DNA of 64,000 nucleotides, taken from positions 1,736,001 to 1,800,000 of the forward strand of contig OX337232.1 in the NCBI GenBank assembly GCA_946965045.2, written 5' to 3'. The position numbers and the translations under genes are program-made. A model generated the notes under the pieces. That model was not told the origin of the DNA and ran no database searches. It worked only from the letters and a program-made list of their open reading frames with translations. The stretch comes from Epithemia pelagica (taxonomy: Eukaryota > Protista > Bacillariophyta). Below are positions 24,291 to 45,084 of the stretch, one piece after another (position 1 is the first letter of the stretch; the number at the start of each line of letters is the position of its first letter).

Positions 24291-24812
24291 AGGAAGATGG
24301 GTTCAGATGGATATTTGTAACTGCTCGACAGCGCGGAGCCTTCCGGTTGAGCAACCTGTCACCGGCACAGTCTGTCGCAGCACGACCAAGATAATGCCGT
24401 CTTCTTCAAACAATCTCATATGGACCACGAGAAAATAGTGTGAGGTGAGATGTGATCTTTTTCTTCTACTTTCTTCTACTTTACGTAGACTTAATTCGCG
24501 CGATTCCATTATTCCTCGTTTTGTGCTTTTCGACAATGGTCGTGTAATGTGCACCATGTTTGGCTGGGACATCTGTACGTTAGTTATGCAGTGAAAAGAA
24601 ATAAAAACTAACTCAAATAATTGACTTTATGAAAGTATCTGCTACAATACTGAGATTGGAAAAGGCTAAGAGTGTCTCTTTCGTCTCTCCACAGCTGTTA
24701 CAAACATGATCGACGTACGACCAGACCGTCCATGTATAGAAGAAATGCCCTTGAATCTCGGATTCAGACCCTGTATACTCTAGAAAGAGTTGATATTGAC
24801 TGACTCATTTTT

Positions 24813-25199
24813 CTACTCAGTCCATTCAATGTCTTCAAAGTCATTCTTCATCTGCCGCTGGTTGAATTCTGCCAAGGGAAACTCCTCGTAGACAGCATGA
24901 CTCAAGACATGGTCTCTCGCAGAAAACGAGTCAGATTCTCTTTTTCGACACACCAGCTTGTTCATAAGAAACAAATGCAGTCGCTTGAAAAGTCCGGCAA
25001 TTCCAGTTGTTCGAACCAAATTTGGTGGCAAGTCAATACCATTCTCATTCTGGTCAGTGTTCGCCATAATCAGATATCTCTCCGCCGCAATCGAGAGGGA
25101 AGATCGCTTCTTTGTTTTGTAGGAAGGTCTGATGCGATCACGGGTGTACTGTTCGCACTGTTTTGAGAGCGGCGTCATATGCATAGGAACGGAACTCAT
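24813..25199 (-). CDS. Small hypothetical protein
   Basis: 128-aa ATG-initiated ORF in an otherwise empty 1.2-kb interval; no homology recognised. Confidence 0.35.
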   Translation of the reverse strand: MSSVPMHMTPLSKQCEQYTRDRIRPSYKTKKRSSLSIAAERYLIMANTDQNENGIDLPPNLVRTTGIAGLFKRLHLFLMNKLVCRKRESDSFSARDHVLSHAVYEEFPLAEFNQRQMKNDFEDIEWTE

Positions 25200-25524
25200 G
25201 CCTGTCTTCGCTTCGTCTCAATTGTTCAAAGTCAACAGAAAACCATTTGTAACAAGAGTGCAAACCATGGTTTACTCGAAGTTCATGACGTAAACGGACA
25301 AGTTGTTTGGTTGTGTTCCATCACCAGCTGAAAGGTCCAAATCCAGTCCCGTATTGTATATTTTTGGATAGATGGTAGTCACGCGTTTCATGAAACGCAG
25401 GCACTCACCTCCATCGCATTCAGTATCCGTTATCCGTATGAAACGCACGGTTTGTTGAATGAGCTGCAATGTCCTTTGCGAAGCTTTGCCCTTCCCAATT
25501 CGTGGAGAATCCCAAAGGTTGCTA

Positions 25525-27816: not shown

Positions 27817-27983
27817 TGGTCCAGATTCCGTCGAAAATGTGAGTATGGGTGCGACGTGTGATGACCAATCAAATAACGATCCAAGGACAGACTGCAGCGA
27901 CGTTTTTGACTCATCCCCTCGATGTGTGCTGACAGAAAAGAGAAAGATCTTCGACAAACCAAAAACAATATAAAATATAAGAC

Positions 27984-28523
27984 ATGAGACATTTGACATC
28001 CCTCATATCAGCCCTCTTGGCAGCCACACAAGCCATTATCCTCCGCCAACCGAAAGCAACATGGTTCATTGACGGAAACAATCTGATGGGGCACAAAGGA
28101 ACACCACGTGATCGACAAGCCATCGCTGACAAACTCCAACCAGTGGAGCAGGCGAGCTCGGATTTACACATTCTTCTCATTTGGGATGGGGTCCCAGGCA
28201 AAGACAGCGTCTCTGTTGTCCCAGAGAGTGTCCAAGATGAAGACCTAGGAGGTGATACGACCTCCGTATTCCAGGTCGTTTCCTTGGCCGAGGGTATGAC
28301 GACGGACGATTGGATTATGGAACAGCTCGTGTTCCTCAAGCAATCTGCACCTTTTGCCAGAGTCCAAGTTGTGACAGCTGACCGTGCATTACGGAGGAGA
28401 GTTTTGGAAACAAAACCTATAGTCAAGGGCGTTGTCAATCCAGTGGTATTTTGGCGACGCTATCGTCCTAGACTAACTGGACTGAAAAGCGACTACTCCA
28501 ATGTTCCGAAGAACGAAGAATGA
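27984..28523 (+). CDS. NYN/PIN-domain (YacP-like) putative RNase with signal peptide
   Basis: WFIDGNNLMG, LIWDG, TTDDWI and VVTADRAL supply the acidic PIN-fold catalytic residues. Confidence 0.8.
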   Translation: MRHLTSLISALLAATQAIILRQPKATWFIDGNNLMGHKGTPRDRQAIADKLQPVEQASSDLHILLIWDGVPGKDSVSVVPESVQDEDLGGDTTSVFQVVSLAEGMTTDDWIMEQLVFLKQSAPFARVQVVTADRALRRRVLETKPIVKGVVNPVVFWRRYRPRLTGLKSDYSNVPKNEE

Positions 28524-28746
28524 TCTTCTTGATGAAGTTAACCTCTGAAGGTCAGGAAACAACAACAGAAATCAGTAACCAGGTAGACTTAGACATGACA
28601 AGTTCTTATTATGTTTCATACCTTTGTAGCCGTCGTGCGCAACCTTTTGAAGCCAAATAGATACGTGATATGACGCCAATTCTGACAGGACTTTCCTATA
28701 CACCATGCTTTGCATTTGGATCACTTGTTTCTAATCCATTTTCTGT

Positions 28747-29619
28747 TCATATCCCATCTGTTTGCTTTATGAGCTGTGCTGGGTCCGAATGCCCCTGTGT
28801 CGAAGTGCTTTCGCCTATCGTTGCTGATGATTGCGTTTGCGATCCTTGTTTTATTGTTTCATCTTCATTTTCGACCACTTTTTCTTTGCCGTTTTCGGCC
28901 TTGCTTCGACTTACTACGTGGTCGGAGTTGCGTGAGACAGCGGGAGCAGTTTTGGTTGACAGGACCGTCAATGAATCGGCGTGTTCCGTTCGCCACACGC
29001 TTTTTTTCTTCGTCAGTGTTTCATAGTGCGATATGTAGTAGTCATAGTTGTTCAATGTATAGTCTCCCACAGCGGCTTCTGTTAAAGCGATTAACCGCAA
29101 TTGATTGTGTTCCATTTCTTTTCGTAGCATTAACCGACGAGCACGTCGCTTCCTTGATTTACCCTGTTGCATTCTTTTCTCCCGCATCAATTCCTGCCAA
29201 GAAGATTCAATATCCTTTCGTATCGCAATCGCCAGGTCGAGCTGTTCCAATAAACCCTGACGACGACTTCGGACCAACTCGCGAATTCGTGTGGCCGATG
29301 TGGCTGCATTGGAGAGAGATTTTTCTCTTCCAGGGTCATTTGTGGAAAGATCATTTCCACAAGGTGCATTTTCCACGCTAGTTGCTGCGGAGCGTGATAT
29401 CGCTGAATGCTGAGCATGGTTTTGATAACCCACTTCTTTCTCAGCCTCTTCGAGTTCGTCTTCGACGACTAGATATTCGTGCGTCTCTTCTCCATCGTGA
29501 TGAGTTGTTGACAGTGTGGAGTGCTCAAGAGACTCCTGATACAATCTTTGGATGTGCTTTAGCTGTGCTTTTTGATGGATCGTCAAATTTGGCTGTTCTT
29601 GCCCCGTCGCCGATGACAT
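28747..29619 (-). CDS. Hypothetical coiled-coil protein
   Basis: 290-aa ATG ORF with a charged helical middle; no family recognised. Confidence 0.55.
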   Translation of the reverse strand: MSSATGQEQPNLTIHQKAQLKHIQRLYQESLEHSTLSTTHHDGEETHEYLVVEDELEEAEKEVGYQNHAQHSAISRSAATSVENAPCGNDLSTNDPGREKSLSNAATSATRIRELVRSRRQGLLEQLDLAIAIRKDIESSWQELMREKRMQQGKSRKRRARRLMLRKEMEHNQLRLIALTEAAVGDYTLNNYDYYISHYETLTKKKSVWRTEHADSLTVLSTKTAPAVSRNSDHVVSRSKAENGKEKVVENEDETIKQGSQTQSSATIGESTSTQGHSDPAQLIKQTDGI

Positions 29620-29914
29620 TGATAAGGTGTCTATTTCGATCAGGGTCTCGCAAAACTGGAAGCCTTGCCCATGGCGTTGCGGTTGCGTTGGGTGACAACG
29701 AAAACGGACGGCCCGAACCCGAAGCTATTACCTCTAAGGGCTGGGTGCACCGATTTGGTGTCTTCTAGGTCTGACCGCGCGTACGTGTTTTGTGGGGGAG
29801 GGGATGTCATCACATTTTACTCGCACATCAAAAATTTCATGCCCTACAAGATGGAAGACAATTCGACCATGGTATGAACCTCCCGATCACAATAACTTCC
29901 TGAATATACAGAAC

Positions 29915-29983
29915 TAATTGAGACAAACTTAGGATACTCTTTGTAGATGCCTTATGGACCTGAGGTTCAGTTTGTCTCAATTA
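29915..29983. repeat. Perfect 15-bp inverted repeat with 39-nt spacer
   Basis: TAATTGAGACAAACT (29915-29929) and AGTTTGTCTCAATTA (29969-29983). Confidence 0.85.
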
Positions 29984-30290
29984 CCTCCCAAAAATGAGCA
30001 TGCTAACCAAGAAGACACCAAATCGGTGCACCCAGCCCTTACCTACCGCATCCGCCAGTATTCCCCAGCGCGTAAGTCAATGAGGGTTGTTGAAAGGAAA
30101 ATAGTACCTCCGAAACACCCCCGCTGAGGAATGCATTGAAATTTCAGACTCTCGCTCACACTCCCCAGCGGAGGTGTTTTTCAGGTTGTAATTTCGTTGA
30201 AAAAAAAAAACCCCGCTAGGGGTTACGGTCACGGTCGGCGATTGCTTTTTCAGATTATTTTTTTCAGACTTGCCCAAAAAGCGAAATATC

Positions 30291-31265
30291 ATGAGTACGT
30301 TCCGAATCGAATCGGAAACCAAAGGTCGATCAGAATTCTTTGATGGAGATCAAGGCAAAGTCGCCTTATCTGATGAAAGTGCTCGCATGGATGGCATTTG
30401 GTGGGTAGAAGCAGTTGAAAGCGCCCTCAATCTTCATCCTGACCAGCGAGACGAGAAGCAAGAGAGCAACAGTGAAACGAAAACATTTGGAAACTATGCG
30501 TGCGCACACTCACAAAGCAACGGAGGATTCCGCGAGTCGTCACAATCGGTAGACTCAAAAGAAGATGATCCTTTGCGACAGAAGAAAGGATGGCCTAAAT
30601 TTCGTTTGCGCAGCAGAAAGCCTTCATCTAATGATAAATCGAAACAGAATGAAACCTCAGCTCCATCTCCAGTCTCCATTCCGAATACTGCAATTGAACA
30701 CGACTCTTCCATCCCTGCAAGCCAATTAGAAGTCACGACTTCATCACTGCAGCAGTTTGTGTTTGTTCATGAATCTAGCCAGCATCTGATTCAAGATATT
30801 CATGGTCATACTGTTTTACATGTTCTCCCAGGTCGAATTGATTTGGGGTATAGTGCGACGGTGTATACGTTGGCTCTTTCGCATTACTTGGAAAGTCTGT
30901 TTCAAGTATTGGCAACGGATGTGAAGCTTACTGTTTTGCTTGATGTACGGGCTGGACGTGGCTGGCCAAATCCACCGGCACTTCAAATGGTCGGTTTTAT
31001 TCGTCGTGTGGCATCCGATCTATGTGCACGATATCCGAACTGTCTGAACAAGTGCCTCATATTCCCGTTGCCTCGAGCAGCTACTGCTATTTGGAACTTT
31101 GTGGTTAAACCATATCTGGATGAAAATCTTCGTAATTCTATGGAGTTGGTTCCAGGTAACAGCACCGGAGTCGATTCACCACCACCGACGGAGAAACTGT
31201 CGGCATTTCTGTCCACTGAGAATGTGGATCATCTAGAGAGACACAGACTCTCATGTTTCAATTGA
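30291..31265 (+). CDS. CRAL-TRIO (Sec14-like) lipid-binding domain protein
   Basis: LTVLLDVR…IRRVASDLCARYPNCLNKCLIFPLPRAATAIWNFVVKPYLDE matches the CRAL-TRIO C-terminal pattern. Confidence 0.75.
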   Translation: MSTFRIESETKGRSEFFDGDQGKVALSDESARMDGIWWVEAVESALNLHPDQRDEKQESNSETKTFGNYACAHSQSNGGFRESSQSVDSKEDDPLRQKKGWPKFRLRSRKPSSNDKSKQNETSAPSPVSIPNTAIEHDSSIPASQLEVTTSSLQQFVFVHESSQHLIQDIHGHTVLHVLPGRIDLGYSATVYTLALSHYLESLFQVLATDVKLTVLLDVRAGRGWPNPPALQMVGFIRRVASDLCARYPNCLNKCLIFPLPRAATAIWNFVVKPYLDENLRNSMELVPGNSTGVDSPPPTEKLSAFLSTENVDHLERHRLSCFN

Positions 31266-31565
31266 GGTTAGAGAGATGGACGATGAGAACTACCGTAATT
31301 TGTAATTTTCGGTTTCCTGTACCCCATGGATCAGTGAGGGGGGTACAGGACCAAGAGAATTTTTACTATTTTTTTTAAGATTCCATACGCAAGGTACAAT
31401 TAAATTCATAGTAATAGTTAACTTCAACATCGGAGTAGTAGAGAAGAGTCGGTCGCACTATTCCAGTTATGGGAAAGACCGTGCTTCTTCGCGTAGCCTT
31501 AACCCTAAGCATAATACCCATCCTGCTGTATCTCTTGTTTCTCCTCTTTGATTCATTCCCATGCA

Positions 31566-31680
31566 CGCGGGGATCGACCCAGCGAACACATCCTGCGGTC
31601 TGTGTTGTCGCGAGGTCGTCACAGTAGCTAGTAGGAGAGAGTGCTAGGATGTAGACACACACGTTTGCCGAAAGGCCCAG
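31566..31680 (-). repeat. Repeat B2, distal part
   Basis: Matches B1 36140-36264 except for a 10-nt deletion and one substitution. Confidence 0.92.
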
Positions 31681-34199
31681 GGACACCCGTCATTTTGGTT
31701 CCTCAAGGATGACTTTAGCTACCCTACTATTGGGTAGCTAGAGCTGATCGCTAATTTCGCGAGGGCTAGCTATATTTATGTACAGTAGGGTTCGAGTTAA
31801 ATACCCGTGTTCAAGACCAAACGAGTTGTTAATTATTCTTATATCCGGTATGTACTGGTCAGAAGATTTTGTGGATCTACGTCTATCCTACGTAGCCCAG
31901 TACCAGAAGCCTGGTCATTTCTGGTCAATTTGGTCATTTCTGGTCAATTTTAGACGAGGCATGGCGTGCGCGGGCACGGACACTCAGGCATAAAAGTGAC
32001 TGTCGCACGACAACGTGAGCCGATCAGACCATCTCGCCGAGCCCCACCCCATAAACAAGAACCCAAAATGCTCTCTCTCGATTCTCAATTGTCTCATTTT
32101 TCCCGAAGAATTAAGAAAGCAAACCCTGGGGATGGATCCAATACATGCAACAATCAAACAAAGCTGTCAACACTACTTTATAAGGTAGAAAATGAGGACA
32201 TCCTGTTACAAAGGATCCTGCATCCTGCATGGAAAAGCGAAAACTCTTGACCATCTATTCTACTTGGGATTGTAGCCTCTCGGCTTGGCTACCTACAAAA
32301 GATGGGCTAAGGTAGATCGTCACAGTTCATGCAATAAAATATGGATCCATCCATGTCCACAACAAGCTGGAATGTGTGAATTGGAAACTGGTAGCTTTTC
32401 CCTTTCCACTTTCCAATCAATAGATATAGCTAATGTTACTGGTCGTCTCTAGCTAGGAGTACCTAGCTAGTTTATCCCTTTCCTAGCTAGATGAGCCTAC
32501 CTAGGTAGTATAGGTAGCGATCCTGAGTCCCGTATCGTAGTACGGGAGTATACATACTCGTACTCGTAGGGGTCAGAGTCAGAATGGTTGGGACGGGATC
32601 CCAATCCCATCGGGCGTGGGGTGGGGGGTGCTGATTTTAGATCGGCTTAAATAAAATCCCGCCTACGCGGAAAATGTCGGCGCGCTCTATAAGGGCCTCT
32701 CCGACTCTAACCTAAAACCTTCGGTATCAGTGTCCACTGCTTAGCTGTTGTTTGTCTGTGCCATCTTCAAAGGTTCCCAAGTGGACACAGACAGCATTTT
32801 TCGTTTTTCGTCTGTCTGTCTAACCATTAAAATTCCTCAGGGTTGAAGCAAGGCCAGCGTGCAAGTGACAGTTGACGGTTGGTGGTTGTCCTCGCCGGGT
32901 CACCACGATTCAAATTTGGGCATCCATCATCATCTCGACACCTGTCACAAAAACCCAAAACCGAGCCAAATGCTTGACCATGACGGGGGTGAGGTGAGAA
33001 CAATGGATGGATCATGCTGGACTGAACCGTTTCTCTCTATTGCTGCTTATTACTTATCTTGTGGTCTCTTTTCCCTTTTTCTCACGCATCACTGCTGCAG
33101 CTGTCTTTCCTATTGTTCTTGCATGATCCTTTACTTTTGTCTCATTTCGTACGAGTAGATGACAAGCCGCCAGATGTCAACTGGAATATCTTTTCCTTGT
33201 CGTAATCGTTTGTTGTTTGATTGTTTTTTGGCTACTGTCATATGCTCTATAGGATAGATTATTCTCTCTTCTCTCTCATCATAGCGTCATTCTCAATCAT
33301 TTCTCAACGATGTTGTTTTTGCATCAAATAGATGGGAAGCCATCTTGCCACACCCTACTGACCAATTATCATATCCTACCTAGGTAGGCGACACAAAGTG
33401 AGCGGTACAAGCTTGTGAGAGCTGTTCTGTTGTGTTTTCATAGCAAAACTGAGGGCCGTCGTCGTGCTCAAAACAAAGAACAGAGCTCCAACGAATTCAG
33501 AAGGCTCAAAAGTCTCATGGATGACAAGCACTGGCGTTATACTACTAGTAAATAAACAAAAGAAGGTCCAGAGTATAGAGTATGTATTTTAATGCAATCA
33601 AAGTTATGGGGCTCAGCAAAAACCAGTCATTTCTGTTCGACAAGAATGAACAATGGCAAGTAATGAGCTGCCCAGCGACTAAACAGATGAGTAGCGTCTC
33701 ACACGAGCAGAGCAAACAAAAGTGGCAAGTGGCAGTGAGCATGACTGATGTCATTGACAACATGGCAATTGGCAATGGATCAAGCTCACCTGGAAAGCCA
33801 GTAACATTCGTAAGTACCTACCTAGTAAGTACGATGTGCTTTGGCAAAAGAAAAGAGAATTGTGAGCCTGCCCCGAATTATGCAACAACCAACCGTCATC
33901 CACGCAGGGGACGCTTGTTGGGCTTGCGTCCGCTTCAAACGTCGAAAAATTCAGCTGGGCATGCGTGCCAATTTGCAATTTGATAATTTCTATTTGCATC
34001 AAAAGCGAAAAATGCTGTCTGTGTCCACTTGGGAACCTGTGAAGGTGGCACAGACAAAAAACAGCTAAGCAGTGGACACTGATACCGAGGGAAAAATTGA
34101 CCAGAAGTGACCATCGCCAGAACAGGATCTTCTTTTCTATGTCGCATTTGAGTCTCGTATTATGATGATCGCTAAATAATCTTTCCAGTTTGAGTCGTG

Positions 34200-34350
34200 T
34201 TGGTGTCCACTTGTTTCGCTGGTTTCGACTTGGTGTCCACTTGGTGTTCACTTGGTGTCCACTTGTGTCCACTGGTTTCGACTTGGTGTCCACTGGTTTC
34301 GATTGTGGTTTCGAGTTGGTTTCAAGTTGGTTTCGAGTTGGTTGCGACTT
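34200..34350 (+). repeat. ~11-bp minisatellite array 1 (TTGGTGTCCAC / TTGGTTTCGAC units)
   Basis: About 14 degenerate units; block 34249-34323 is identical to 35565-35639. Confidence 0.9.
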
Positions 34351-35512
34351 GCGACCCCTCTACAAACTTCGAACGCAATAATCAACCATCTCGCGCAATC
34401 GCCTCTGGCGACAAGAGGAGTGGTAAAAGCAAGTGAGAGGGTGCTTTGTTTGGTAGGAGGCTACGCTCTGGCGACAACAAGAGGAGTGGTAAAAGCGATG
34501 AACGCCAGACAGCATACAAAGTCTTGGTCATATGTCGGAGTGGGACAAGCAGAGTGTGTGCACTAGGTAGATGTAGATGTCCTGTAATACTATAGTAGAG
34601 CAACTCCGTTTGAATGAAACACACATTCCCAAAAACCACAACTCTAAATTGTATCAGCTGCCCATGTATTCGTAAAACCAGACAAGGATTCCAAGATGGG
34701 TCATGTGGACCTACCCCCGGAGCATTTTTGTGTGCGTGTGCAAACCTTTGGTCTCCCAAACGACGTTGGAAGTTCCGAACAAATCAACCATAAAAACTAC
34801 TCCTAACAGACACAGGAAGAAGACTGACAAGACAAGAAAGAAACGATCTACGGTTCGTGTGATATCGGTCGAAATAGAAAAAAAGAAACTCATTCTTATC
34901 CTCTTACAAATCTTGGCAGACCAAACCAAAGTAAGTGGTAGAGACAAGTGGTATATCTACATCCGCTCCGCGGAGTGGGGAGGCACGAGGAGGGGCTATT
35001 GACTCCGAGAAGGGCAATAGCTCCGAGAAGTGGACCGCCTTCTAAATCCGCGTCAGCGGATTTGGCGGTCCATGACGAGGAGCTATTGCCCGCCGAGGAG
35101 TCAATAGCCCCGACAAGTGCCCCCACGACCAGGAGTGGATGTCGCTTGCTTCTATAACCTCCGAGTCCCCCCTAATTAACTGTCACACTTTTTTCCCAGG
35201 ACTGTTTTTTTTGCTCCGCACTAGCTTTTTTAGCTCCGCACTTGCTCGCTTATGAGAGCGCGGCCGTCGTGGGCAATATAAGGCTATATTAGACGAGTAG
35301 ATTTTGATTCCTGTTGCTCTGAATAACAGACTATTCATGAACGGGACGTTTGCTAATTCTGTGGAAGCTTTTCTTGTAAAACTTGGAGCGGTGCGCAGCC
35401 GGAACAACGTCCATGTTGTGGAGAAGACCACCCGGCTCGAGCTCGAGGTCTCTCACGACTCACGAGGATGGCTCGTGCTGCAATAACACGCCAATCAACC
35501 CATACAATACTC

Positions 35513-35664
35513 TTGGTGTCCACTTGGTTTCGACTTGGTTTTGACTTGGCGTCCACTTGGTGTCCACTTGGTGTCCACTTGTGTCCACTGGTTTCGACTT
35601 GGTGTCCACTGGTTTCGATTGTGGTTTCGAGTTGGTTTCGAAGTGGTTTCGACTTGGTTTCGAC
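35513..35664 (+). repeat. ~11-bp minisatellite array 2
   Basis: Same two unit types and orientation as array 1. Confidence 0.9.
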
Positions 35665-35922
35665 GTTACCTCGGATTCACACGTGCTTAGGCCTTGCGGA
35701 CTCGGAAACATTTATTGTATAAACCCTAATTTAACGGTAAAATTCAATTTTGATCTTATTTCAAGATCAAAACTCTTAAATATAATAAAGTCAACGGAAA
35801 TTTTTGGTAAGTACTGCACTTATTTTGCTGTAGTCGATCGCTAAATTCACACTGTACCACTCGACAAGACTACCACGAAAGCGGAAAAGTCCATGTCGCC
35901 ACCAAAGTAGCGGGTGTCCCAG

Positions 35923-35944
35923 AAGGAACCAAGATGGCTCCCAC
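35923..35944 (-). repeat. Repeat B2, proximal part
   Basis: AAGGAACCAAGATGGCTCCCAC is identical to B1 36265-36286. Confidence 0.9.
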
Positions 35945-35972
35945 GGGCGGGAAAAGGGAATTTTTTTTTATC

Positions 35973-36139
35973 GTCTTAGTCTATCTATCTGTGTAGACTT
36001 CTCAAGATGGCAGTTGCAATGCTCGCAATCTCAAGAATTGTGAGCATGGACATCGCATCAAAGATGTCCAAGTCCGGTGGGGCTTGTCGTAGTCTATGTG
36101 CGATCAACTGCCCCGCTCCAACGTACGCACGACAGACAC
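35973..36139 (-). repeat. Split direct repeat A2
   Basis: 167 bp with 1 mismatch to A1; abuts B1 at 36139/36140. Confidence 0.97.
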
Positions 36140-36286
36140 CGCGGGGATCGACCCAGCGAACACATCCTGCAGGTTGGAGCGGTCTGTGTTGTTGCGAGGT
36201 CGTCACAGTAGCTAGTAGGAGAGAGTGCTAGGATGTAGACACACACGTTTGCCGAAAGGCCCAGAAGGAACCAAGATGGCTCCCAC
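36140..36286 (-). repeat. Split direct repeat B1
   Basis: 147 bp; its counterpart B2 is split by the TIR element. Confidence 0.93.
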
Positions 36287-36340
36287 CAACATTGAAGAAG
36301 AAGGCATCTCGGAAGTGTCAGGCTCATTTGGATCTTGTTC

Positions 36341-37650
36341 TCAAAACTCCAGATTCAACTGCGTCAAAAAGGTTCCGAATGCAACGGAGCCATTGAACTT
36401 GATTTCCTCAGGAGACTCGATTGCTGCTTCGATGTTGGATTGGATAGCGTCGATGTCACCTTGATCCATTGTTGTTTGGTTGGTCGGGTCGACGTGGCGA
36501 GAGTCCGGATTTGTTAGCATGGCTGTTGACATTCCGGCCGTCCATTCCATCACCTGTGGACGGATGTACCGGAGAAAGGCTGCCGACGACCATCTGCCAA
36601 GAATCATGATTTTCAAGACCGAAGTGTGGGCGAGAAAGAGCGCCATTGCTGCTCCTGAGCGGAGAGAATGGGTGCCGATTCCATCGGTCGGTACCCGAAC
36701 ATCGCTTGGCCACCACCTGTTGTGCAAGAGGAGCGAAGGAGTCTTATGGTGTCTTCCGCGCGGATGTATCTCGGTTTTGGTTGCGTGTTGGTTGACAGTT
36801 GTTGCGGGTCGAACCAACAATTAACCGGCGTTGTTGGGGGCGCTTCCGGCCTGTAATGGAGGATGCGACGGACGATGCGTCCCCACAGTCGAAAGGGACA
36901 CAGGATTGGGTCGGCTGTGCGGCTTTGGGTGCGAGTTTCGTATTTCTTGTCAGATTTTTGTTGCGTGAACGTGATGGAGGCGAAGAAGGCTTGTTCGGTG
37001 AAGTCGGGGTCGGTTGGTTTGATTTTGGATCGCAACTCGTCGTTGCGTTTGAAGCAGATGTTGCCGATCGTCAACAATTTTGTTTTTCCTCGTTGTTTCA
37101 CGGTGGAGTATTCACAACTTCGCATGGCGAAGAAGTATCCGGCCAGGGCGAGATCCGCGATGCAGGCTTCGAATGTGGAGAGGTCGATGTCGCCGTGGAT
37201 CCTTGTCGCAAACTCCCACATGAAGCGGAGGTGGCGTGGTGTGATCGCTTTTTGTCTCTTTTTGTCAGGGTCTATTTGAGCCCATGCTTTTTTCAGTGAT
37301 TCAATAATTGGGTGGTACCGGTTGCATCCCGGGACGTGGCAGGGGCTCGGCCGGTCGTTATACCGGAAGCGCGATGCCACGTTGCTAAGGGCCTTCTCGA
37401 GAGTTGTTGCTTGAAGAGGGTCCTTAGCCCCTCTTGTGAAAGCTCCATCTCGAAGTCTTTGCAAGAAGGTGCCGATGATCTGCGATCGCGTTCGAAGGGT
37501 CTTGATGCCGTCCAAAAAGGGGCCGTGTTGGAGTCGGAACAATTCGAGGTGCTCGCGCCATCGTTTCCATGTGCGGTCAACGGCTTCATTGGACGACTCG
37601 ACTCGTCCAAAGAAAATTCTCGCAGCAGCGGTGCGACGGATGAGATCCAT
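36341..37650 (-). pseudogene. Tyrosine recombinase of the retrotransposon, frameshifted near 36685
   Basis: YFFAMRSCEY (R) and QQKSDK (K) lie in one frame; GTHSLRSGAA (HxxR), LGRWSS and FLRYIR (Y) lie in the -1 frame. Confidence 0.9.
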
Positions 37651-40073
37651 GATTGCACTTCGCTGGGCAGGGGGCAAATCTGGAAGTTCTTGGGAATCTG
37701 TGAAGGGTACAAGTCGTGGATACGACGGGTTAGATCTTTATCGCAACAATCAAACGTTCGGGAAAGAAGGTCAGTGACAACATTTGCTTTTCCTGGAATG
37801 TGCACAGGATGCAACAGAAAGTCGTATTGAAGAACTAACTCCGTCAGTTTTTCAGAAACCCGTTGGTGGTTTGGCTTGTTGGAGCCAAAGGATGACTTGT
37901 GCATCCATCCGGTCGCCGAGCTGCTGTCCGAAAGTCCCAGGACACATGATTCGGATGTGATGGCGCCGTCGCAACAATCAACCCAGATCGTGACGACCTG
38001 GCAAAGGAACTCGAATAGGTTGTTCGAGAGTTTCAGGTCTGGGTCTTGGCCCAGTTCGTCTTGTTCCATTTCGGATTGGTTGGCCGCGAGGGCATAGATC
38101 TCGGGGTCTAATGGCACGTGCCAAGCTTTCCCGGTACGTATTGAGAATCCGCCCATGCCGTATGGGCATGAGTCCGCAATTACGACATTTGCTGGTTGGC
38201 GGCATGTCAACAGGTTGAGACTGACTCCTTTGTGTGCTTTCGCTAGGAGTTTCGACCATATGCGGAGATCTTGCTTGATGGCCTTTGGGATTCGGTATCT
38301 GAACCAAGGCTTCGGTCGATCTTGGTTCTTGGCTGACGGTGTGTCACGGGTCTCCTTGTTTTGTTGTTGCGATTTGCCGTACTTGAGTCGGTGTTTTCTC
38401 AAAATGTGTTCTTTTAGCTCTTGTGTTCGCTTTGTGTGGTAAAGTGCTAGGGGGATGCCTTTGCAGGCATGGATCATCTTTCCCAACATCGATTCGAGCT
38501 CCTTGAAAGTAACATAAACTCGTTTCGAGTCAATCCACGCTTCAATCTCGCGCAACCAACAGGTAAACTTGTCAAAGGGTAAACGCATCAACAATCTACG
38601 TGTGTCGATGATCCAGCCAAGCACTCGCATTTCTTGGGATGGAGCTCCTTCGGCTTTCATTTTGTCCTCGGCCAGGATATCGTTACGGTCGATTGGTTTG
38701 AAGGGTGAGGTTGGCCGAACAAGGAGGTGGAGGACCAGTGGCACGATGCCTGGTGCCCGGTCGATGTATTCTTGACAATCAACGAAGAGTTGTATCATGT
38801 CGTCGATATAGACGTCGTGATGTCCTTGGGGTCTTGGTTCAACGTCGACTGCCATTGGTTTTCCAGCGTGAAAAGGATCATCCATGCGTTTGATTTCCCC
38901 CATCAAGTCCTGAAGCGGTGAGCGACAAACCGAGGTGTCCCACTCGTCCAAATCTGCAACATCGTTGCAGAGGTCGCAGGATGCCTCGGAATAGACGCTG
39001 AACATCGCCGGATGTGGGCGGCCGCCGAAGGTAAGTCGAGTAAGGAGGTTTGCAAATTCTCCACTCACATCTGTTGTAATCGTATTCGCGACTAGGATAC
39101 CGTCGCCGTTGATGCGACGGTATGCGGAGCCCCAGTCGAACTTGCAAACAAGGATGCGCTTGTTGGGGAATTTTAGTCTCAAAGCAACAATCTGGTGGAT
39201 GATCCTATCGAGACACCACCCAAATACCAAATCAATCAACTCAGATTCGTCGCTTAAGTCGTTCAGAGACGGTGCGAAGCCGAGAGAGAAAGATTGATCA
39301 TGGGCTAAGCGGTCCTTGATCACAATGTTGCCATGCTCATCAATACCTGCGTGTTGAGCAACACCGAGTGGTCCGGCTCTGCCTTGTTGGATCTGGCGAG
39401 CACAATCAAACGAAATAGGGAACGAGTATCCAAACTTGGTATCCTTCTTGCAAACCTTGATAAGGGCCTCGGGGCGGCGTCTGGCTGAAGCGTGGTTTCC
39501 ATAAGCGAGGATGGCGTCATTCTCGAATTGGCGGTTGATGTCAGGTGGTAGTGGCTTGAAGTCGTAACTTGCACCGTTTCGTAATGTGTCCTGGATGCGC
39601 TCCCAGAAGGGGTGGTGACGTAGAAGTTGGGAAATGGAGCTTAGCGGTCGGAATTCGGATCCAGGACTGATTGTTGTGCCTGGATAAGCGTCGAACAACT
39701 TCTGGAGGTCAAAGTCAAAACTTTTAATAAGGTCTGAATTGAATTTTGCCGCTTCTGCAGATGTCTCATGTTGGAATGGCGACGGGAGTGGAGCTGGGAC
39801 GACTTCTTTACTGATGGCCAAGATGGTGTCAATCTTGTGGGTATGGGTTGGATTAGCTAGTTGTGGGCGCCGTATCTTATTCGTAAAGATTAGCGATGGG
39901 TTGTTTGGTAGATAGTTCTTGCCTCCTTGAAAGTCAACAAGGGAGGGGTTGTCGTGGTTGATGGTAGATAGAGTAGAGGGACAAACAGGGTCAGACTCAC
40001 CTAGCGTAGATTCTCCTAATTCAATCTCTGATTCGAGTCTGGTAAGATTCCGTTGGAGGGATTTACCAGTCAA
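37293..40073 (-). CDS. Pol: reverse transcriptase + RNase H (DIRS/Ngaro type); frame open from 40184, no early ATG
   Basis: FDWGSAYRRI, LTFGGRPHP and VYIDDMI (RT). IADSCPYGMGG, LFEFLCQ, LSDSSSA and ANVVTDLLSR (RNase H D-E-D-D). The 3' end overlaps the YR ORF. Confidence 0.95.
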   Translation of the reverse strand: MTGKSLQRNLTRLESEIELGESTLGESDPVCPSTLSTINHDNPSLVDFQGGKNYLPNNPSLIFTNKIRRPQLANPTHTHKIDTILAISKEVVPAPLPSPFQHETSAEAAKFNSDLIKSFDFDLQKLFDAYPGTTISPGSEFRPLSSISQLLRHHPFWERIQDTLRNGASYDFKPLPPDINRQFENDAILAYGNHASARRRPEALIKVCKKDTKFGYSFPISFDCARQIQQGRAGPLGVAQHAGIDEHGNIVIKDRLAHDQSFSLGFAPSLNDLSDESELIDLVFGWCLDRIIHQIVALRLKFPNKRILVCKFDWGSAYRRINGDGILVANTITTDVSGEFANLLTRLTFGGRPHPAMFSVYSEASCDLCNDVADLDEWDTSVCRSPLQDLMGEIKRMDDPFHAGKPMAVDVEPRPQGHHDVYIDDMIQLFVDCQEYIDRAPGIVPLVLHLLVRPTSPFKPIDRNDILAEDKMKAEGAPSQEMRVLGWIIDTRRLLMRLPFDKFTCWLREIEAWIDSKRVYVTFKELESMLGKMIHACKGIPLALYHTKRTQELKEHILRKHRLKYGKSQQQNKETRDTPSAKNQDRPKPWFRYRIPKAIKQDLRIWSKLLAKAHKGVSLNLLTCRQPANVVIADSCPYGMGGFSIRTGKAWHVPLDPEIYALAANQSEMEQDELGQDPDLKLSNNLFEFLCQVVTIWVDCCDGAITSESCVLGLSDSSSATGWMHKSSFGSNKPNHQRVSEKLTELVLQYDFLLHPVHIPGKANVVTDLLSRTFDCCDKDLTRRIHDLYPSQIPKNFQICPLPSEVQSWISSVAPLLREFSLDESSRPMKPLTAHGNDGASTSNCSDSNTAPFWTASRPFERDRRSSAPSCKDFEMELSQEGLRTLFKQQLSRRPLATWHRASGITTGRAPATSRDATGTTQLLNH

Positions 40074-40651
40074 ATGATAGGGGAAGGAGAGCCAAACGAT
40101 CGCGGTTTGCCAAAAAGGATTTGAGATTGTGGGTCGGGGGTTAGTAGAACATCGCCTTGCTCGTGGTTCCGAGTTGAAGCTTCTTCAACGTTCCGAATGA
40201 ATGTCGCACTTGCTGGTGAGGAAGAATGGCTTGTAGACGGGGTCGGGCATTGAGAACTCTGGTGCTCATCCTTGGGGGAACGTAATATCGGTTGGGTCGT
40301 ACAGTCAGTCTTGGGGGAATGAGAATTCGCAACCGTCGATGCGGGCTTATGTTTATCGAAAATTTTGGTCTTGAAATTTTTCTGGAAACGGACCGTCGGT
40401 TCAGATGGGGCTGGCGACGGTCGTAAGATCTTTTCTTTCACATCAGCAGAAGAGATTCGGCGTTCATCAGAAAAGACTTGGGGAATCAACGGAGTTGGAG
40501 TTCTTGGAACTTGGAAAGGAATGTCACTTGGATCTGGTGGGATCGTAATCGGTTGTCTTCGTGTGATTGGTGGTGATGGAGGGTAGAGAGATGAGAAGTA
40601 AGAGGAACCGTTTTTTTCTAGAAGAAGGGAATACGCTGTTACCCGAATCAT
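40070..40651 (-). CDS. Extra Pro/Ser/Thr-rich ORF between gag and pol (possible N-terminus of Pol)
   Basis: ATG 20 nt after the gag stop; 193 codons; overlaps the pol frame by ~115 nt with pol in the -1 frame. Confidence 0.5.
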   Translation of the reverse strand: MIRVTAYSLLLEKNGSSYFSSLYPPSPPITRRQPITIPPDPSDIPFQVPRTPTPLIPQVFSDERRISSADVKEKILRPSPAPSEPTVRFQKNFKTKIFDKHKPASTVANSHSPKTDCTTQPILRSPKDEHQSSQCPTPSTSHSSSPASATFIRNVEEASTRNHEQGDVLLTPDPQSQILFGKPRSFGSPSPII

Positions 40652-40670
40652 CAATCAACCCGGCAACTTG

Positions 40671-43481
40671 TCAAGTGTTCTTCTTGGCGTCGGCAAATGC
40701 TTTCTTGTAAAAGGCTGACATCGCCTGGCCCTTCCCATGCTCACGAGGGTCTGCGTGGCTGAAGGGGCATTGGTTACCATTTCGGCAATATTTCAAGGTA
40801 AAAAGCTTGTTGCAAAACGGACGGTCAACTCCTTCTACCGTCATATGAGGGATTTTCTCGAGCACGGATCGTGAGAAAACTCGGGAGTACTGGAGGTCGG
40901 TGGGAATACACCAGTCAGAAGGAGAGTCAAAGCGAACAATAGTGGGGGGAGGGGCGCTTGGATCGACAGTTGCTTTTCGTTTCTGCGAGTTCGACGAATG
41001 GTTTGTGGATGAATTCTTAGAAGAATCATTCTGTCCTCTTGCCTTGGCTCTGATAGCGGACTCAATGAACTTGGGAAGCATCTTGCAGATGTCTTCTTTT
41101 GATTTGATCTTGTCGCATAACTTGTTTATGTGGAAGTCCAACCGGTCACTACGGATATCCTCAACACACTTGGCGTCCTCAAGGTATATATCGATAAAGC
41201 GTTGGATGGCGAATTCGATCGAGAAAAGGACACGACACAAAAACGTTGGGTCCACGGCTTGACTGCTTCGGTAGATGTATCGATTGGAGAGTAAATGTTC
41301 AACCATCTTGTGGAGCTGCAACGCGACAAAACATTCGTTGTTCCAAATGGCACAAGCGAAAAGGTAGAAGGAACGAAGTTGAGTCTGGTATTCGTCACAG
41401 GAAAGTGGGCAGAAGAGCTTCTCGTTGACAAAGATGTCTCTCATGTCCTTTGTTGATAGTCCGTTGTCACTCCGCAAAGAGCTTTCATAGATAGCATGCT
41501 GGATGTGGTGGTCGAGAGCAAGGTGGGAATCTGGACCAGGGCAACAGTATGGGTCAAAGGAGAAAGGCGAGAAACCACTTGGGTGGTCGTTTCCTCGCCA
41601 ACGTAGACCAAACTTCTGCAACACACCACACTGACCAAAAAGGATATAACAAGCGTTATCTGATTTGCGGAAAACTCGAGCGTGAATCGTCGAGTAAAGG
41701 GTGTGGGTGCTCTTCTGATGAAATAGTTCGGTCGCGATCTCCGAGGGTGACGAGGGCAGCTCAAGGGAGGATGGACCGACTTGACCAAAGACAATAGCAT
41801 TCCGAAGGTAGGTGGTATGTTTGAAAATCTCTTTCTTTTCATCTTCTTTCTCACGGGTAATCTTTGAGGTATGTTTGGCAATGGCATCCGAAAAGTTTTC
41901 GACTAACTTCTCCGTCATGTAAATGGTGTCAGATGAGATTCCATTCGAGACATGGTGGTTCTGGGAGAACATCGGTGGCTGACCAATAGGAGGAACAACT
42001 GGGACGTTTGGGTTAATGGGTGGTAAAGGATCTTGAGGGATGGCTGCCTTTAAAGAAGGAAACAGTTTCGTCGTGTAGCATTCGAATGCCGTCAAAGCGT
42101 CAGTCGAGTTGGGAGGGACTTCGATAGCAATCGGTTCAGTACTAGAGTGCTTGTGGTAGGCAAACCAAAGAAACCGGAACAAGTCGTGGCTAGACTTGAT
42201 CAGCTCGTGGTACATTGGAAATGAGGTGCATTTCATCTGAAGCTCATGTGGGGTCGAAATCATCCAACGCTTGTTCAGAAACTTGAAGATGAGAGAGGCC
42301 AAAAATGGTGCGGTGCAACGAGAAGAGCTCAAGTCTTGTGAACCAAAGTGATCCAACAATAAACCGGAGATGGAAGGATGGAGGGGGAACAGACCTTTAA
42401 GAGCGAAGGTGGTCGCAGCCTCATCCTTGTCAGTCGTAGGTTTCTTGAGATTTCCAAAACGCAACAAATCAAATTTGAAGGATGGGAGAACGTTTTTGGC
42501 ACGGGACTTGGATGCAGACATGGCGTTCTCATCGATGCAACAAAACTTAATAATCTCGTGGGCGGTAGGAACATCGGGATACTCTACTGTCAAGAGGAGC
42601 GCGTCAATGTCTTCAGGGTCGATCCAAATAGGGGGAGAGCCGAATTCACGCTGGGACAAGCCAAGGAAAATCGGATCGGGATTCACGAAGTTTCCTGTAT
42701 TCGGGGCAACGATAAAGTTATGGACAATACGAATCTTGCCGCGATGGTCAACTCCCAAAAAGGCAAGGGGAGTCGAGCCCAAGTCGCAAGTGAGAAAGCG
42801 TTGGAATTTCTCAGCAGAAGAGACGGTATCAAACTTTTCGCAGAATTCAGTCCACGAATTGGGGAACTTATCCAAAGAGCGATGGAAAGGAGATACAAAA
42901 GCATCAGACCAATCTACAGGATCCATGGAATCGACTGTATTCAGACTCTCTTGGGGGAACGGGATGGGGAGACGGAAAAGATCGGAAGGACGGGACAGGG
43001 ATGTCGGCGTCTTGGTGTTGTCTTCGAATCCAATCTTGGGTTCGTGGTGTTTGGGCAAAGCCAAATCCTTTTTTGAAATCTTCTTATGGGTCGCCTTGTT
43101 GGAAGCGGAAGATTTCTTAGAGGTGTAGTTCGCCGGAGTAGTACCATCTTCATCCTGATCGGGACTCGATGAAGGTTTTGTCGTCTTCTTCGAAGTTTTG
43201 ACACTCTTAGAAGAACGGGACTCGAGACTTCCGGAACTACTCGAACGAGTGCGACGACGGCCAATGCCAGAGTCCTCGGGGACATCAGGAGGGTTACCGT
43301 CCAAGCTCAAAAGATCGTCATCGTCATTCGTACCGTAATGAGATTCGGGCTGGGAAGGCTGCGAGATAAACTGAGCCAAAGTGGCAGTCCCGTTGCCTTC
43401 AGTACCGCCAGAATCGGAAGGAGAAGCCGTGTCTTCCATGTTGGAAAACATCTCGTCGTCAAAGGCAGTAGTAACAGTCAT
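40671..43481 (-). CDS. ORF1/Gag-like protein with C-terminal CCCH zinc finger
   Basis: 936-aa intact ORF just downstream of A1; C-x8-C-x5-C-x3-H (CNKLFTLKYCRNGNQCPFSH). Confidence 0.88.
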   Translation of the reverse strand: MTVTTAFDDEMFSNMEDTASPSDSGGTEGNGTATLAQFISQPSQPESHYGTNDDDDLLSLDGNPPDVPEDSGIGRRRTRSSSSGSLESRSSKSVKTSKKTTKPSSSPDQDEDGTTPANYTSKKSSASNKATHKKISKKDLALPKHHEPKIGFEDNTKTPTSLSRPSDLFRLPIPFPQESLNTVDSMDPVDWSDAFVSPFHRSLDKFPNSWTEFCEKFDTVSSAEKFQRFLTCDLGSTPLAFLGVDHRGKIRIVHNFIVAPNTGNFVNPDPIFLGLSQREFGSPPIWIDPEDIDALLLTVEYPDVPTAHEIIKFCCIDENAMSASKSRAKNVLPSFKFDLLRFGNLKKPTTDKDEAATTFALKGLFPLHPSISGLLLDHFGSQDLSSSRCTAPFLASLIFKFLNKRWMISTPHELQMKCTSFPMYHELIKSSHDLFRFLWFAYHKHSSTEPIAIEVPPNSTDALTAFECYTTKLFPSLKAAIPQDPLPPINPNVPVVPPIGQPPMFSQNHHVSNGISSDTIYMTEKLVENFSDAIAKHTSKITREKEDEKKEIFKHTTYLRNAIVFGQVGPSSLELPSSPSEIATELFHQKSTHTLYSTIHARVFRKSDNACYILFGQCGVLQKFGLRWRGNDHPSGFSPFSFDPYCCPGPDSHLALDHHIQHAIYESSLRSDNGLSTKDMRDIFVNEKLFCPLSCDEYQTQLRSFYLFACAIWNNECFVALQLHKMVEHLLSNRYIYRSSQAVDPTFLCRVLFSIEFAIQRFIDIYLEDAKCVEDIRSDRLDFHINKLCDKIKSKEDICKMLPKFIESAIRAKARGQNDSSKNSSTNHSSNSQKRKATVDPSAPPPTIVRFDSPSDWCIPTDLQYSRVFSRSVLEKIPHMTVEGVDRPFCNKLFTLKYCRNGNQCPFSHADPREHGKGQAMSAFYKKAFADAKKNT

Positions 43482-43506
43482 CGTAGATCCAAAGTTGTTT
43501 TTGATT

Positions 43507-43673
43507 GTCTTAGTCTATCTATCTGTGTAGACCTCTCAAGATGGCAGTTGCAATGCTCGCAATCTCAAGAATTGTGAGCATGGACATCGCATCAAAGATG
43601 TCCAAGTCCGGTGGGGCTTGTCGTAGTCTATGTGCGATCAACTGCCCCGCTCCAACGTACGCACGACAGACAC
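43507..43673 (-). repeat. Split direct repeat A1 (5' end of the retrotransposon)
   Basis: 166/167 identical to 35973-36139. Confidence 0.97.
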
Positions 43674-44076
43674 ATGTCAGGCAGAGCTCGGAACGTGAGG
43701 AATGTGGGGGTAACCCTATCACCAGGAAAGAGCCTACAGATAAAAAGTTATGGGGACATGTACATCTGAGGGGGTGGGGGGTACGGGAATGCGAGGGGTA
43801 CAAAACACCGAAAATTACGGTAATCTCTGGATCTGTACGATTCGCGACTCCTTTCATGTTTCTTTCGGTCGCAGTTAATAAAGGTTCTCATTATTTCTCG
43901 CTGGCATCTGTTTCGGAAGAATCGAAAAATCTTGTCGATACTCGTATTCGGCATTTGTGTTAACATTTGAAGCCCGCCTTCTTTTCGTTTGTGAACAGAA
44001 AGTCACTGTTGTATGGTCCCTCATTGCCCCCTGTCTTCTCCTCAGTTGCATCAAGTGCACAAAGTCAAACGTCCAA

Positions 44077-45084
44077 ATGTCGGGAATTCTGTCTAATCGA
44101 TTATGGAACTCTGCACATCGAACAGTTCTCAATGGCAAGTTCAAGCCTGCCGGTTGCGGAAAGATACGACACCTGTCGAACAAGGCAAAGACGAAGACTG
44201 CTCTAGTTCTTGGATCATCTGGTGCTTTGGGCTCGTCTGTATCGCGGTGCCTATGCCAAAATATGAATATGAAGGTCGTTGGTGCTGATATTTTGGAGTT
44301 ACCACCAGAACTTTCTGATGATTGGATTTTGGACGGCTTCATTTCGCTCCCAGAAAATGCTCGACTGCCGGAACTGACTGTGGAACTGCAACGAGGAGTT
44401 CAACAATATTTGCGCGGCCAAAAGGACAGTGATCCTGATCAAGAAAGCTCGAACGGCATTGACGTTATTGTTGTGGCAAGTGGGGGCTGGGAAGGTGATC
44501 CGTCTCTTCTTTCCCCCAACCCAACAGGCGAACCTCTGTTGACGCAAGAAGAAGGTGAAAAGATGGCTTCGGCCGCAGAAAGCTACACCGAATCCATAGT
44601 TCGCATGCGACATATGAACCTGGACCCTGTCATTGCTGCTGGAGTAGTGGCTCAACATTTGTCTTCAAATGAAAACGGACTAATGGTTGTAATTGGTGCG
44701 ACAGCTGCCTTGTCCCCAACGCCTGGTATGATTGGATACGGGCTGGCAAAGGTGGCAACGCATCACTTGGTACAGACATTGGGAATGATGACGGCGGGAG
44801 GCAATCCTTTGGAACGCAAGGCTTTGCGTCAGCAAGCCTATTTAACCCGACAGCCACGTCCTTACATGTCTGTCGTGGGAATTTTACCAACGACGATCGA
44901 CACACCCAATAACCGTAGGGCAATGCCGAAAGAGGACTTTGATCAATGGGCAAAGCCAATGGATATTGCCATGGAAATTGGAAAATGGGCAGAGAATCCT
45001 ATTTTACGGCCTCATTCAGGTAGCCTTGTGAAGGTATCTGGTAAGCCCGGTGGTCAAGGAGCCAGTTTTGAAATCGTCTTCTAG
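44077..45084 (+). CDS. QDPR: Dihydropteridine reductase-like SDR
   Basis: ALVLGSSGALG, VASGGW, GMIGYGLAKVATHHL (YxxxK) and ILPTTIDTPNNRRAMP. Basic N-terminal extension suggests a mitochondrial presequence. Confidence 0.88.
   Translation: MSGILSNRLWNSAHRTVLNGKFKPAGCGKIRHLSNKAKTKTALVLGSSGALGSSVSRCLCQNMNMKVVGADILELPPELSDDWILDGFISLPENARLPELTVELQRGVQQYLRGQKDSDPDQESSNGIDVIVVASGGWEGDPSLLSPNPTGEPLLTQEEGEKMASAAESYTESIVRMRHMNLDPVIAAGVVAQHLSSNENGLMVVIGATAALSPTPGMIGYGLAKVATHHLVQTLGMMTAGGNPLERKALRQQAYLTRQPRPYMSVVGILPTTIDTPNNRRAMPKEDFDQWAKPMDIAMEIGKWAENPILRPHSGSLVKVSGKPGGQGASFEIVF

Follow-up and report, generated by a model that had tools for sequence, protein, structure and literature searches.

The spacer between two closely packed genes in the genome of the diatom Epithemia pelagica is filled with 12.5 kb of transposons nested one inside another. 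The stretch analysed here, hereafter the window, comprises 64,000 nt of contig OX337232.1 (positions 1,736,001–1,800,000; listed here as C5:1736001-1800000) in the 60.5-Mb, 23-contig assembly GCA_946965045.2, and coordinates are those of the window unless another contig or locus is named. A first, sequence-only reading of this DNA had proposed a three-tier nest, in which a miniature inverted-repeat transposable element (MITE) contains a tyrosine recombinase (YR) retrotransposon, and the latter contains a DNA transposon flanked by CAG. A self-comparison of 30500–44500 combined with direct reading of the boundaries recovered every boundary listed in that reading, and the 12.5 kb that it placed between the two genes agrees with the spacer arithmetic (stop codon ending at 31265, start codon at 44077). 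Our analysis indicates that the spacer, originally ~280 bp, was very probably filled by successive independent insertions, each inside the previous one. The main features of the locus are the following:

30291–31265, plus strand: upstream gene, encoding a CRAL-TRIO domain protein, with a stop codon that ends 25 nt before the left TA
31291–31292, no strand: left TA target-site duplication (TSD) of the outer MITE, with TA on both sides in 14/14 aligned family copies
31293–31565, plus strand: left part of the outer MITE (E1), 273 bp, Stowaway-like, with the terminal inverted repeat (TIR) CCGTAATT(TGTAATT)TTCGG, recognised by genome matches
31566–43673, minus strand: YR retrotransposon of Ngaro-like layout, 12,108 bp with its nested load and ~7.87 kb without
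31681–35919, plus strand: E2, non-autonomous PIF/Harbinger-type (NuwaI-like) element, 4,239 bp, TIR GGACACCCG..., with the TSD CAG at 31678–31680 and 35920–35922
43674–43820, plus strand: right part of the outer MITE, 147 bp, recognised by genome matches and family alignment
43821–43822, no strand: right TA TSD of the outer MITE, read in the sequence and in the family alignment
44077–45084, plus strand: downstream gene of the short-chain dehydrogenase family (DHPR in the first reading), with a weak adh_short match

The outermost layer is a short multi-copy element with fixed ends. It starts as TA/CCGTAATT... at 31291/31293 and stops as ...AATTACGG/TA at 43820/43821, which is where its borders had first been placed, and it measures 420 bp without the insert (273 + 147 bp). 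Each of its two pieces gave 40 scored matches in the whole genome, out of more than 70 candidates (76 for the left piece), so the family has at least 40 copies, and intact copies are ~430 bp long, with one subfamily at ~90% (88–92%) and a second at ~80% identity. The first reading had named MITE copies with different ends as an observation that would speak against it. All 14 copies that were aligned with their flanks run from TA/CCGTAATTTTCGG to CCGAAAATTACGG/TA, while the flanks themselves are mutually unrelated; the ends are therefore those of a family and not a chance match, and the claim stands. Three indels are private to the window copy: 7 nt are duplicated at the left tip, and 10 nt are missing both near 31326 and at a point 11 nt rightward of the junction with the retrotransposon. 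The family is short and non-coding, bounded by TIRs of ~26 nt, strict in its TA duplication and rich in copies within its subfamilies, all of which are features of Stowaway-type MITEs, and the tentative assignment to Tc1/mariner is made from the TA TSD.

The middle layer is a retrotransposon with split direct repeats, and its parts are arranged on the minus strand as follows:

43495–43673, minus strand: repeat A1, the 5' end of the element in sense orientation, identical to A2 at 175/179 positions
40671–43481, minus strand: open reading frame (ORF) 1, open, 936 aa, Gag-like in its placement, with a weak CCCH zinc-finger match at the C-terminal end
37293–40073, minus strand: open ORF of 926 aa for reverse transcriptase (RT) and RNase H, recognised by motifs and predicted fold
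36341–37677, minus strand: tyrosine recombinase gene with a 1-nt frameshift at ~36679, recognised by predicted fold and conserved residues
36140–36286, minus strand: repeat B1, uninterrupted, 147 nt, the empty site for the CAG-flanked element
35961–36139, minus strand: repeat A2, 179 nt, meeting B1 at the junction 36140/36139
31566–31680 and 35923–35944, minus strand: distal and proximal parts of repeat B2, split by E2

Read in sense, the order is A1, ORF1, the RT/RNase H ORF, the YR gene, B1, A2, a 16-nt spacer and B2. The joint between B1 and A2 is the exact sequence expected if the two ends of the element were ligated, and such an internal end-to-end joint is a hallmark of split-direct-repeat YR retrotransposons (PMC4157794). 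The outer limits given in the first reading, from the B2 end at 31566 to the A1 end at 43673, were located in the sequence and are shared with other genomic copies. Eight other full-length copies, 77–86% identical overall, stop at the same base of A1, and in five of these eight a copy of B2 stops at the outer base seen here. A ninth full copy (L084), found on another contig of the same ENA assembly, has the same split-repeat layout, unrelated flanks on the two sides and no TSD. In intact MITE copies ...CCCATGCA is directly followed by ATGTCAGGCAG..., and in the window these two sequences flank 31566 and 43673; the insertion of the retrotransposon was therefore exact, with neither target duplication nor loss. 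The B2 repeat of the window has a private ~10-nt deletion, and the B2 region of the second haplotig described below aligns ~9 nt longer.

The enzymes of the retrotransposon escape sequence searches and are recognised by their predicted folds. Pfam searches with every ORF of the element, even at E ≤ 5, returned no RT or YR family, only chance-level matches and the weak CCCH match of ORF1 (zf_CCCH_4, E = 0.0018, below Pfam's cut-off), and sequence searches of the PDB for RT and YR, with single sequences and with profiles, gave no meaningful match. A word search with the 926-aa ORF found at least 143 homologues, all of them unnamed and none with a Pfam domain. Nevertheless, 35 aligned homologues conserve the RT motifs K.D..SAYRR, LTFGGSP, YIDD and LGW..DT together with the RNase H motifs SDSCP.G.GGYS, NNLLEF, DSTSA.GWL and H.PG..N.VAD.LSR. 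The AlphaFold model of the ORF (pLDDT 81, pTM 0.83) matches the RT folds of MMLV, foamy virus, HERV-K, Ty3, XMRV, CaMV and HIV-1 with probability 1.0. The nearest named clusters in an Atlas sequence search carry RVT_1 and come from Basidiomycota and Cnidaria. The recombinase gene is intact in the ninth copy (L084:9367-10677, 436 aa) and at least 564 homologues of it were found, which bear hypothetical or unnamed annotations and lack a Pfam domain; the closest named ones belong to the diatoms Epithemia clementina and Fragilaria crotonensis. In the recombinase alignment R177, K232, R331, W354 and Y362 do not vary, the consensus keeps the HS.R box, and the predicted structure (pLDDT 84) matches Cre, IntI, XerA and the Tn1549 Int with probability 1.0, and also Flp. 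Judged by these models, the 926-aa ORF is a retroviral/LTR-type (LTR, long terminal repeat) RT with RNase H and the 436-aa protein is a Cre-type recombinase, and their identities are regarded as settled because the predicted folds match where the sequence searches were blank. The initial label of a YR retrotransposon is thus upheld by the two sets of folds, the split direct repeats and the lack of a TSD. The frameshift of the window copy sits just upstream of the HxxR box and is also present in the second haplotig, so it is probably a real mutation rather than a read error. A methyltransferase-like domain was found by Pfam in no ORF, and the models show RNase H and YR without an unassigned folded domain between them, which is negative evidence only.

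The ends of the element are conserved to a much higher degree than its genes. Across the eight other genomic copies and L084, repeats A and B, together with the ~200 nt that adjoin A1 on its inner side (43300–43673, 36140–36286), are 90–99% identical. In an identity profile against L084, for which the two halves of the window B2 were joined before comparison, the ends are 90–98% and the genes ~70–85% identical, and across copies the ends are 94–99% identical. Conserved ends beside diverged genes suggest, at the level of sequence comparison, either strong cis-constraint or an exchange of ends between subfamilies. A separate observation concerns the last 62 nt of repeat A, which match (83%) a sequence on another contig (C11:1421048-1470322) containing at least seven repeats with a period of exactly 8,202 bp. 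Ribosomal DNA was considered as the identity of this array and is not supported; the scored large-subunit rRNA matches lie on C17 and C8 (4 of 37 candidates scored). A related YR element, multimerised in tandem, could account for the array.

The inner layer is delimited by comparison of the two B repeats. Uninterrupted B1 reads ...GGCCCAGAAGG..., and B2 reads ...GGCCCAG/GGACACCCG ... CGGGTGTCC/CAGAAGG...; since B1 is intact across the site, E2 extends from 31681 to 35919 with a 3-bp CAG duplication. These are the borders first assigned to it, and B1 serves as its empty site. Searches with the ends of E2 found 12 left-end and 19 right-end matches in the genome. In five relatives that were read, CTG adjoins the GGACACCCG end, on both sides in three of them and at the sole recognisable end in the other two. 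One relative of 5,034 bp (L077) shares the TIRs of E2 and is flanked by a CTG TSD, and its positions 3068–4060 (L077:3068-4060) match the transposase domain DDE_Tnp_4 (PF13359, E = 7.4e-12); the CWG duplication of 3 bp and this transposase-encoding relative support the view of E2 as a DNA transposon with a CAG TSD. A Myb/SANT second ORF was sought among candidate ORFs of L077 and another relative (L079), taken as continuous frames, and none had a Pfam match. Subterminal arrays of 11-nt tandem repeats (34200–34351 and 35512–35664) are common to E2 and its relatives and hold a motif close to the TIR core, and by this resemblance they probably serve to bind protein. Some 540 bp of E2 (34446–34951, 35301–35338) have no match in other E2 copies or elsewhere in the genome search.

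When E2 was searched against the genome, most of its length turned out to belong to other families. The three layers of the first reading and their order are right, but its depth is not, since two further elements (E3 and E4) lie one inside the other within E2 and make a stack of five: MITE, YR element, E2, E3 and E4. A sixth element (E5) is a side entry. The elements inside E2 are:

31839–34129, plus strand: E3, unclassified and non-autonomous, with ~0.9 kb of its own sequence (31839–32717, 34092–34129), flanked by TTC at 31836–31838 and 34130–34132
32718–34091, plus strand: E4, non-autonomous TIR element of 1.37 kb nested in E3, with 91-nt TIRs starting CCCTCGG
34952–35300, plus strand: E5, 349 bp, containing a palindrome, lacking a TSD and confined to this haplotype

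Six other copies of E3, 94–95% identical, lack E4. Among six E3 copies with both ends, four have identical 3-bp flanks (TTC, TTC, ATC and TTC) and two differ at one base; no convincing TIR was found in E3. In seven other copies of the E2 family E3 is absent, and the sequence continues uninterrupted across its site. The closest E2 relative, which is free of E3 (C2:5126448-5131907), has TTCTTC at the E3 site (L076:255-265), where the window has TTC-E3-TTC. E4 is represented by at least 13 full copies that are 95–98% identical, and its 30-nt terminus has 96 forward and 98 reverse matches in the genome against 0 for a control pattern, which therefore correspond to ~97 copies. TTAA flanks are absent, despite the CCC...GGG ends of E4. 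In three places inward-facing E4 termini stand 5–8 kb apart instead of the usual 1.35 kb (C3:4199522-4206006, C2:3502919-3511330 and C4:2501490-2506868), and these pairs are candidates for an autonomous partner or for E4 copies with nested insertions. For E5, the second haplotig provides a clean empty site without duplication, GACAAGTGG/ATTTTG (in L086), and a block that splits another MITE copy on C2 (L075) matches E5 at 99% identity.

The stack might also have been assembled elsewhere, with E3 and E4 already inside E2 when it arrived in B2 or, in the extreme, with MITE and YR element forming a composite mobilised by the MITE ends. We regard this as rather unlikely. Non-autonomous elements with a nested load are still mobile through their TIRs, E3 and E4 are common to both haplotigs just as E2 is, and the TTCTTC of the closest relative (96% identical at the left end) could be an excision footprint. 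However, the other E2 copies examined (L073, L074 and L076–L082) lack E3 at the site. A long match on C8 had appeared as a candidate for E2, E3 and E4 spreading as a composite; it was rejected, as this locus (L074) is an independent insertion of E4 into a divergent E2-like element, in which the end of E3 is absent. Nowhere else in the genome do MITE halves flank a YR element, which speaks against the extreme version.

The nest is shared by two haplotypes. Exact look-ups of the neighbouring gene products led to contig ctg1246l (loci L086 and L088; ENA ERZ21939226), which is collinear with 23735–39080 and 41212–61464 of the window at 98–99.4% identity. From its sequence we read ctg1246l as the alternate haplotig, because the main assembly holds no second copy of the locus. 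Direct comparison showed three junctions to be identical in ctg1246l, namely the left end of the MITE including its private duplication, the left junction of B2 and E2, and the junction of A1 and MITE; at the other shared junctions, including those of E3 and E4, the contig aligns without a break. The private MITE indels are common to both haplotigs wherever they were checked. Divergence between the haplotigs is 0.4–1.3% in the transposon layers and the same in the flanks (0.6–0.9%). The shared junctions and the equal divergence indicate that the MITE, the YR element, E2, E3 and E4 predate the split of the haplotypes, and the difference between A1 and A2 (4/179) points the same way, to layers older than that split.

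The second haplotig also bears on the reliability of the assembly. A chimeric join of repeats could in principle imitate a nest, as the region is dense in multi-copy repeats, and a further contig of the same project that is identical to the window (ctg1140l) provides no independent support for that reason. Yet ctg1246l has the same three directly checked junctions, aligns unbroken across the other shared ones and carries the same private indels and YR frameshift, while differing from the window by single-nucleotide polymorphisms (SNPs) and five insertions. Additionally, each layer can be removed cleanly to leave intact host sequence with the TSD typical of its family. An assembly artefact is accordingly extremely improbable, and we continue to treat the nest as real chromosomal DNA.

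Insertions have continued since the haplotypes diverged. Apart from SNPs, the two differ by five presence/absence insertions, which are E5, a 301-bp MITE considered below and three insertions found only in ctg1246l. The first of the three is an 884-bp TIR element with ends GAAGCAACCTGAC... and a TA duplication (L086:9512-10397), which corresponds to window 33543 in E4 and makes a sixth nesting level in the second haplotype. A 92% identical copy of this element adjoins a MITE copy elsewhere (L007/L040). The second is a Copia-type LTR (L086:15626-17231, corresponding to window 39080) inside the RT gene. It is 96% identical to two LTR-like repeats at another locus (L083), where a 1007-aa ORF carries RVT_2; the element at that locus is therefore of Copia type, and the RT gene of the YR element is interrupted in the second haplotype. 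The third is a 1.64-kb element in the right arm of the MITE (L088, reverse complement, 2536–4175, corresponding to window 43739), which has the ends GGACACCCGG / CCGGGTGTCC as E2 does, unrelated internal sequence, and CAG on its left and CCG on its right. Judged by its ends, this insertion points to recent activity of the CWG-Harbinger family.

Taken over both haplotypes, at least 10 insertions lie within ~14 kb, in and beside the spacer, and such a density raises the question of active targeting, in which the elements would prefer transposon DNA or the local chromatin and are not just tolerated by the host. E2-type elements entered the nest twice independently, in B2 and, in the second haplotype, in the right arm of the MITE; E3 and E4 each occur inside other E2-like elements elsewhere, and the other copy of E5 lies inside another MITE. 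On the other hand, the elements target short motifs that occur commonly (TA, CWG and NNC), and most copies of each family are found in unrelated flanks. We therefore consider active targeting unlikely. In the simplest reading, the nest grows because the host would lose little when new elements land in transposon DNA that is already dead within a short spacer.

The order of the insertions can be reconstructed in part. Nesting gives the order of MITE, YR element and E2, as the sequence-only reading had stated, and B1 provides the empty site for the third of these steps; nesting also puts E3 earlier than E4, and E5 is recent by comparison of the haplotypes. The proposed history would begin with a Stowaway-like MITE that inserted into a TA ~25 nt past the CRAL-TRIO stop, presumably with a Tc1/mariner-type transposase supplied in trans. 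An Ngaro-like element would then have entered the MITE. Its RNA would have been reverse-transcribed, the internal B1-A2 joint would allow a complete, presumably circular, DNA form, and its own Cre-like tyrosine recombinase would have inserted this DNA into the chromosome without duplicating target bases. In a third step, a non-autonomous CWG-targeting PIF/Harbinger (NuwaI-like) element would have inserted into the CAG of B2. E3, with its TTC flanks, would have entered E2 and E4 would have entered E3, before or after this third step, and E5 would have come last, into this haplotype only. For the nest as a whole, the analysis shows the ends and flanks, the family to which every layer belongs, the protein folds and the haplotype differences, while the chemistry of transposition and the enzymes acting in trans are inferred.

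Several points weigh against this history. Alleles without the MITE, the YR element or E2 were not found, and both haplotigs carry all three. Removal of the layers in turn was first described as restoring an intact B repeat, a MITE and finally a spacer of ~280 bp; the first two are indeed seen, as B1 and as the family copies, but the spacer is deduced from the nesting, and the earlier states are reconstructed rather than seen. Both haplotigs come from one project (ERZ21939226) and are thus not fully independent with respect to assembly error. The TTCTTC of the closest E2 relative may reflect a TTC duplication with an old excision footprint, or else an insertion of E3 without duplication. For E4, a 2-bp A/T duplication fits 3/7 copies, which is no better than chance. 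The middle element is termed Ngaro-like by its layout and domain content, not by a tree with DIRS, Ngaro, PAT and VIPER references.

The start codon of the dehydrogenase gene at 44077 lies 254 nt past the right TA, and the same start is called in the second haplotig. An exact look-up of the DHPR product for empty alleles gave no match. Separately, an Rfam search across 31000–44200 returned nothing. CRAL-TRIO homologues outside the present genome are only 41–48% identical, and there is therefore no orthologous empty site to compare. The 5' part of the CRAL-TRIO reading frame contains a separate, TA-flanked MITE of 301 bp (29738–30038) with the TIR GGGCTGGGTGCACCGATTTGG. This element is missing from the second haplotig (L086), which reads ...CCTCTA/CCTACC... 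there, and the called CRAL-TRIO product has 324 aa in the window versus 364 aa in the other haplotype. The 301-bp insertion may have shortened the gene.

The middle layer is closest to the Ngaro elements of the DIRS order. RT/RNase H and YR are both present, the split direct repeats have the arrangement A1...B1-A2-B2, in which the internal repeats lie downstream of YR, and there is neither a methyltransferase domain nor a TSD; the layout agrees with that summarised for Ngaro (PMC4157794). It differs from Ngaro in that its RT and YR are missed by Pfam (RVT_1, Phage_integrase) and by PDB sequence and profile searches, that its ORF1 is very long (936 aa), and that its ends are 90–99% identical between copies while the coding regions are ~70–85% identical. 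PAT-like elements are also YR retrotransposons with split direct repeats, but in both DIRS and PAT a methyltransferase-like domain separates RNase H from YR, and no such domain was seen in the window element. DIRS1-like elements have inverted terminal repeats and an internal complementary region, in contrast to the split direct repeats found here. Previous reports of YR retrotransposons in stramenopiles are at the level of annotation, with DIRS/Ngaro-like elements in Ectocarpus (PMC3145265) and LTR/Ngaro entries in RepeatMasker tables for Chaetoceros (bioRxiv 10.64898/2026.04.27.720831).

The inner layer is closest to the NuwaI group of the PHIS superfamily, which is characterised by a CWG duplication and TIRs starting with GG (Han et al. 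2015, PMC4482050). The likeness is drawn from the 3-bp CWG TSD, the GG-start TIRs and the DDE_Tnp_4-type transposase in a ~5-kb autonomous relative. Here the host is a diatom, whereas the 2015 survey reported NuwaI from animals only (PMC4482050); moreover, the TIR starts with GGA rather than the usual GGG, and the copy in the window is non-autonomous and has other transposons inside it. Harbinger elements as such are known from Thalassiosira (PMC3145265).

The nest itself is ordinary nesting of transposable elements; of modest interest are the YR and CWG-Harbinger families, each of which adds a new diatom member to a kind already known. Nesting of transposons is textbook knowledge, and intergenic clusters in plants, such as that at maize adh1, are layered with a readable order. 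The present case differs from such plant nests in combining four mechanistic classes within a compact 60-Mb diatom genome, in occupying a 280-bp spacer between closely packed genes, and in being still polymorphic between haplotypes. Modestly new are the base-level account of a diatom Ngaro-like family with Pfam-invisible enzymes and strikingly conserved ends, and a CWG-targeting Harbinger lineage outside animals.

A bolder interpretation, which we offer only tentatively and think doubtful at present, is that the middle layer represents a deep, undescribed lineage of YR retrotransposons that is common in diatoms and marine metagenomes and has enzymes too diverged for RVT_1 and Phage_integrase. 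If this is true, near-constant ends (90–99%) across subfamilies with genes 20–30% different would imply an unusually strong cis-constraint or an exchange of ends between elements. For annotation, the model-based assignments mean that the 926-aa and 436-aa 'hypothetical proteins' of diatoms can be labelled as RT/RNase H and tyrosine recombinase. At base resolution, the nest records the activity of transposon classes, and its order, in a pennate-type diatom genome, and the classes that moved after the haplotypes diverged are CWG-Harbinger elements, TA-flanked TIR elements, a Copia-type LTR element and a small element without a TSD. The analysis adds two families that standard domain scans miss or that were thought restricted, a Pfam-invisible Ngaro-like YR family and a CWG Harbinger lineage, of a group that the 2015 survey had reported from animals only.

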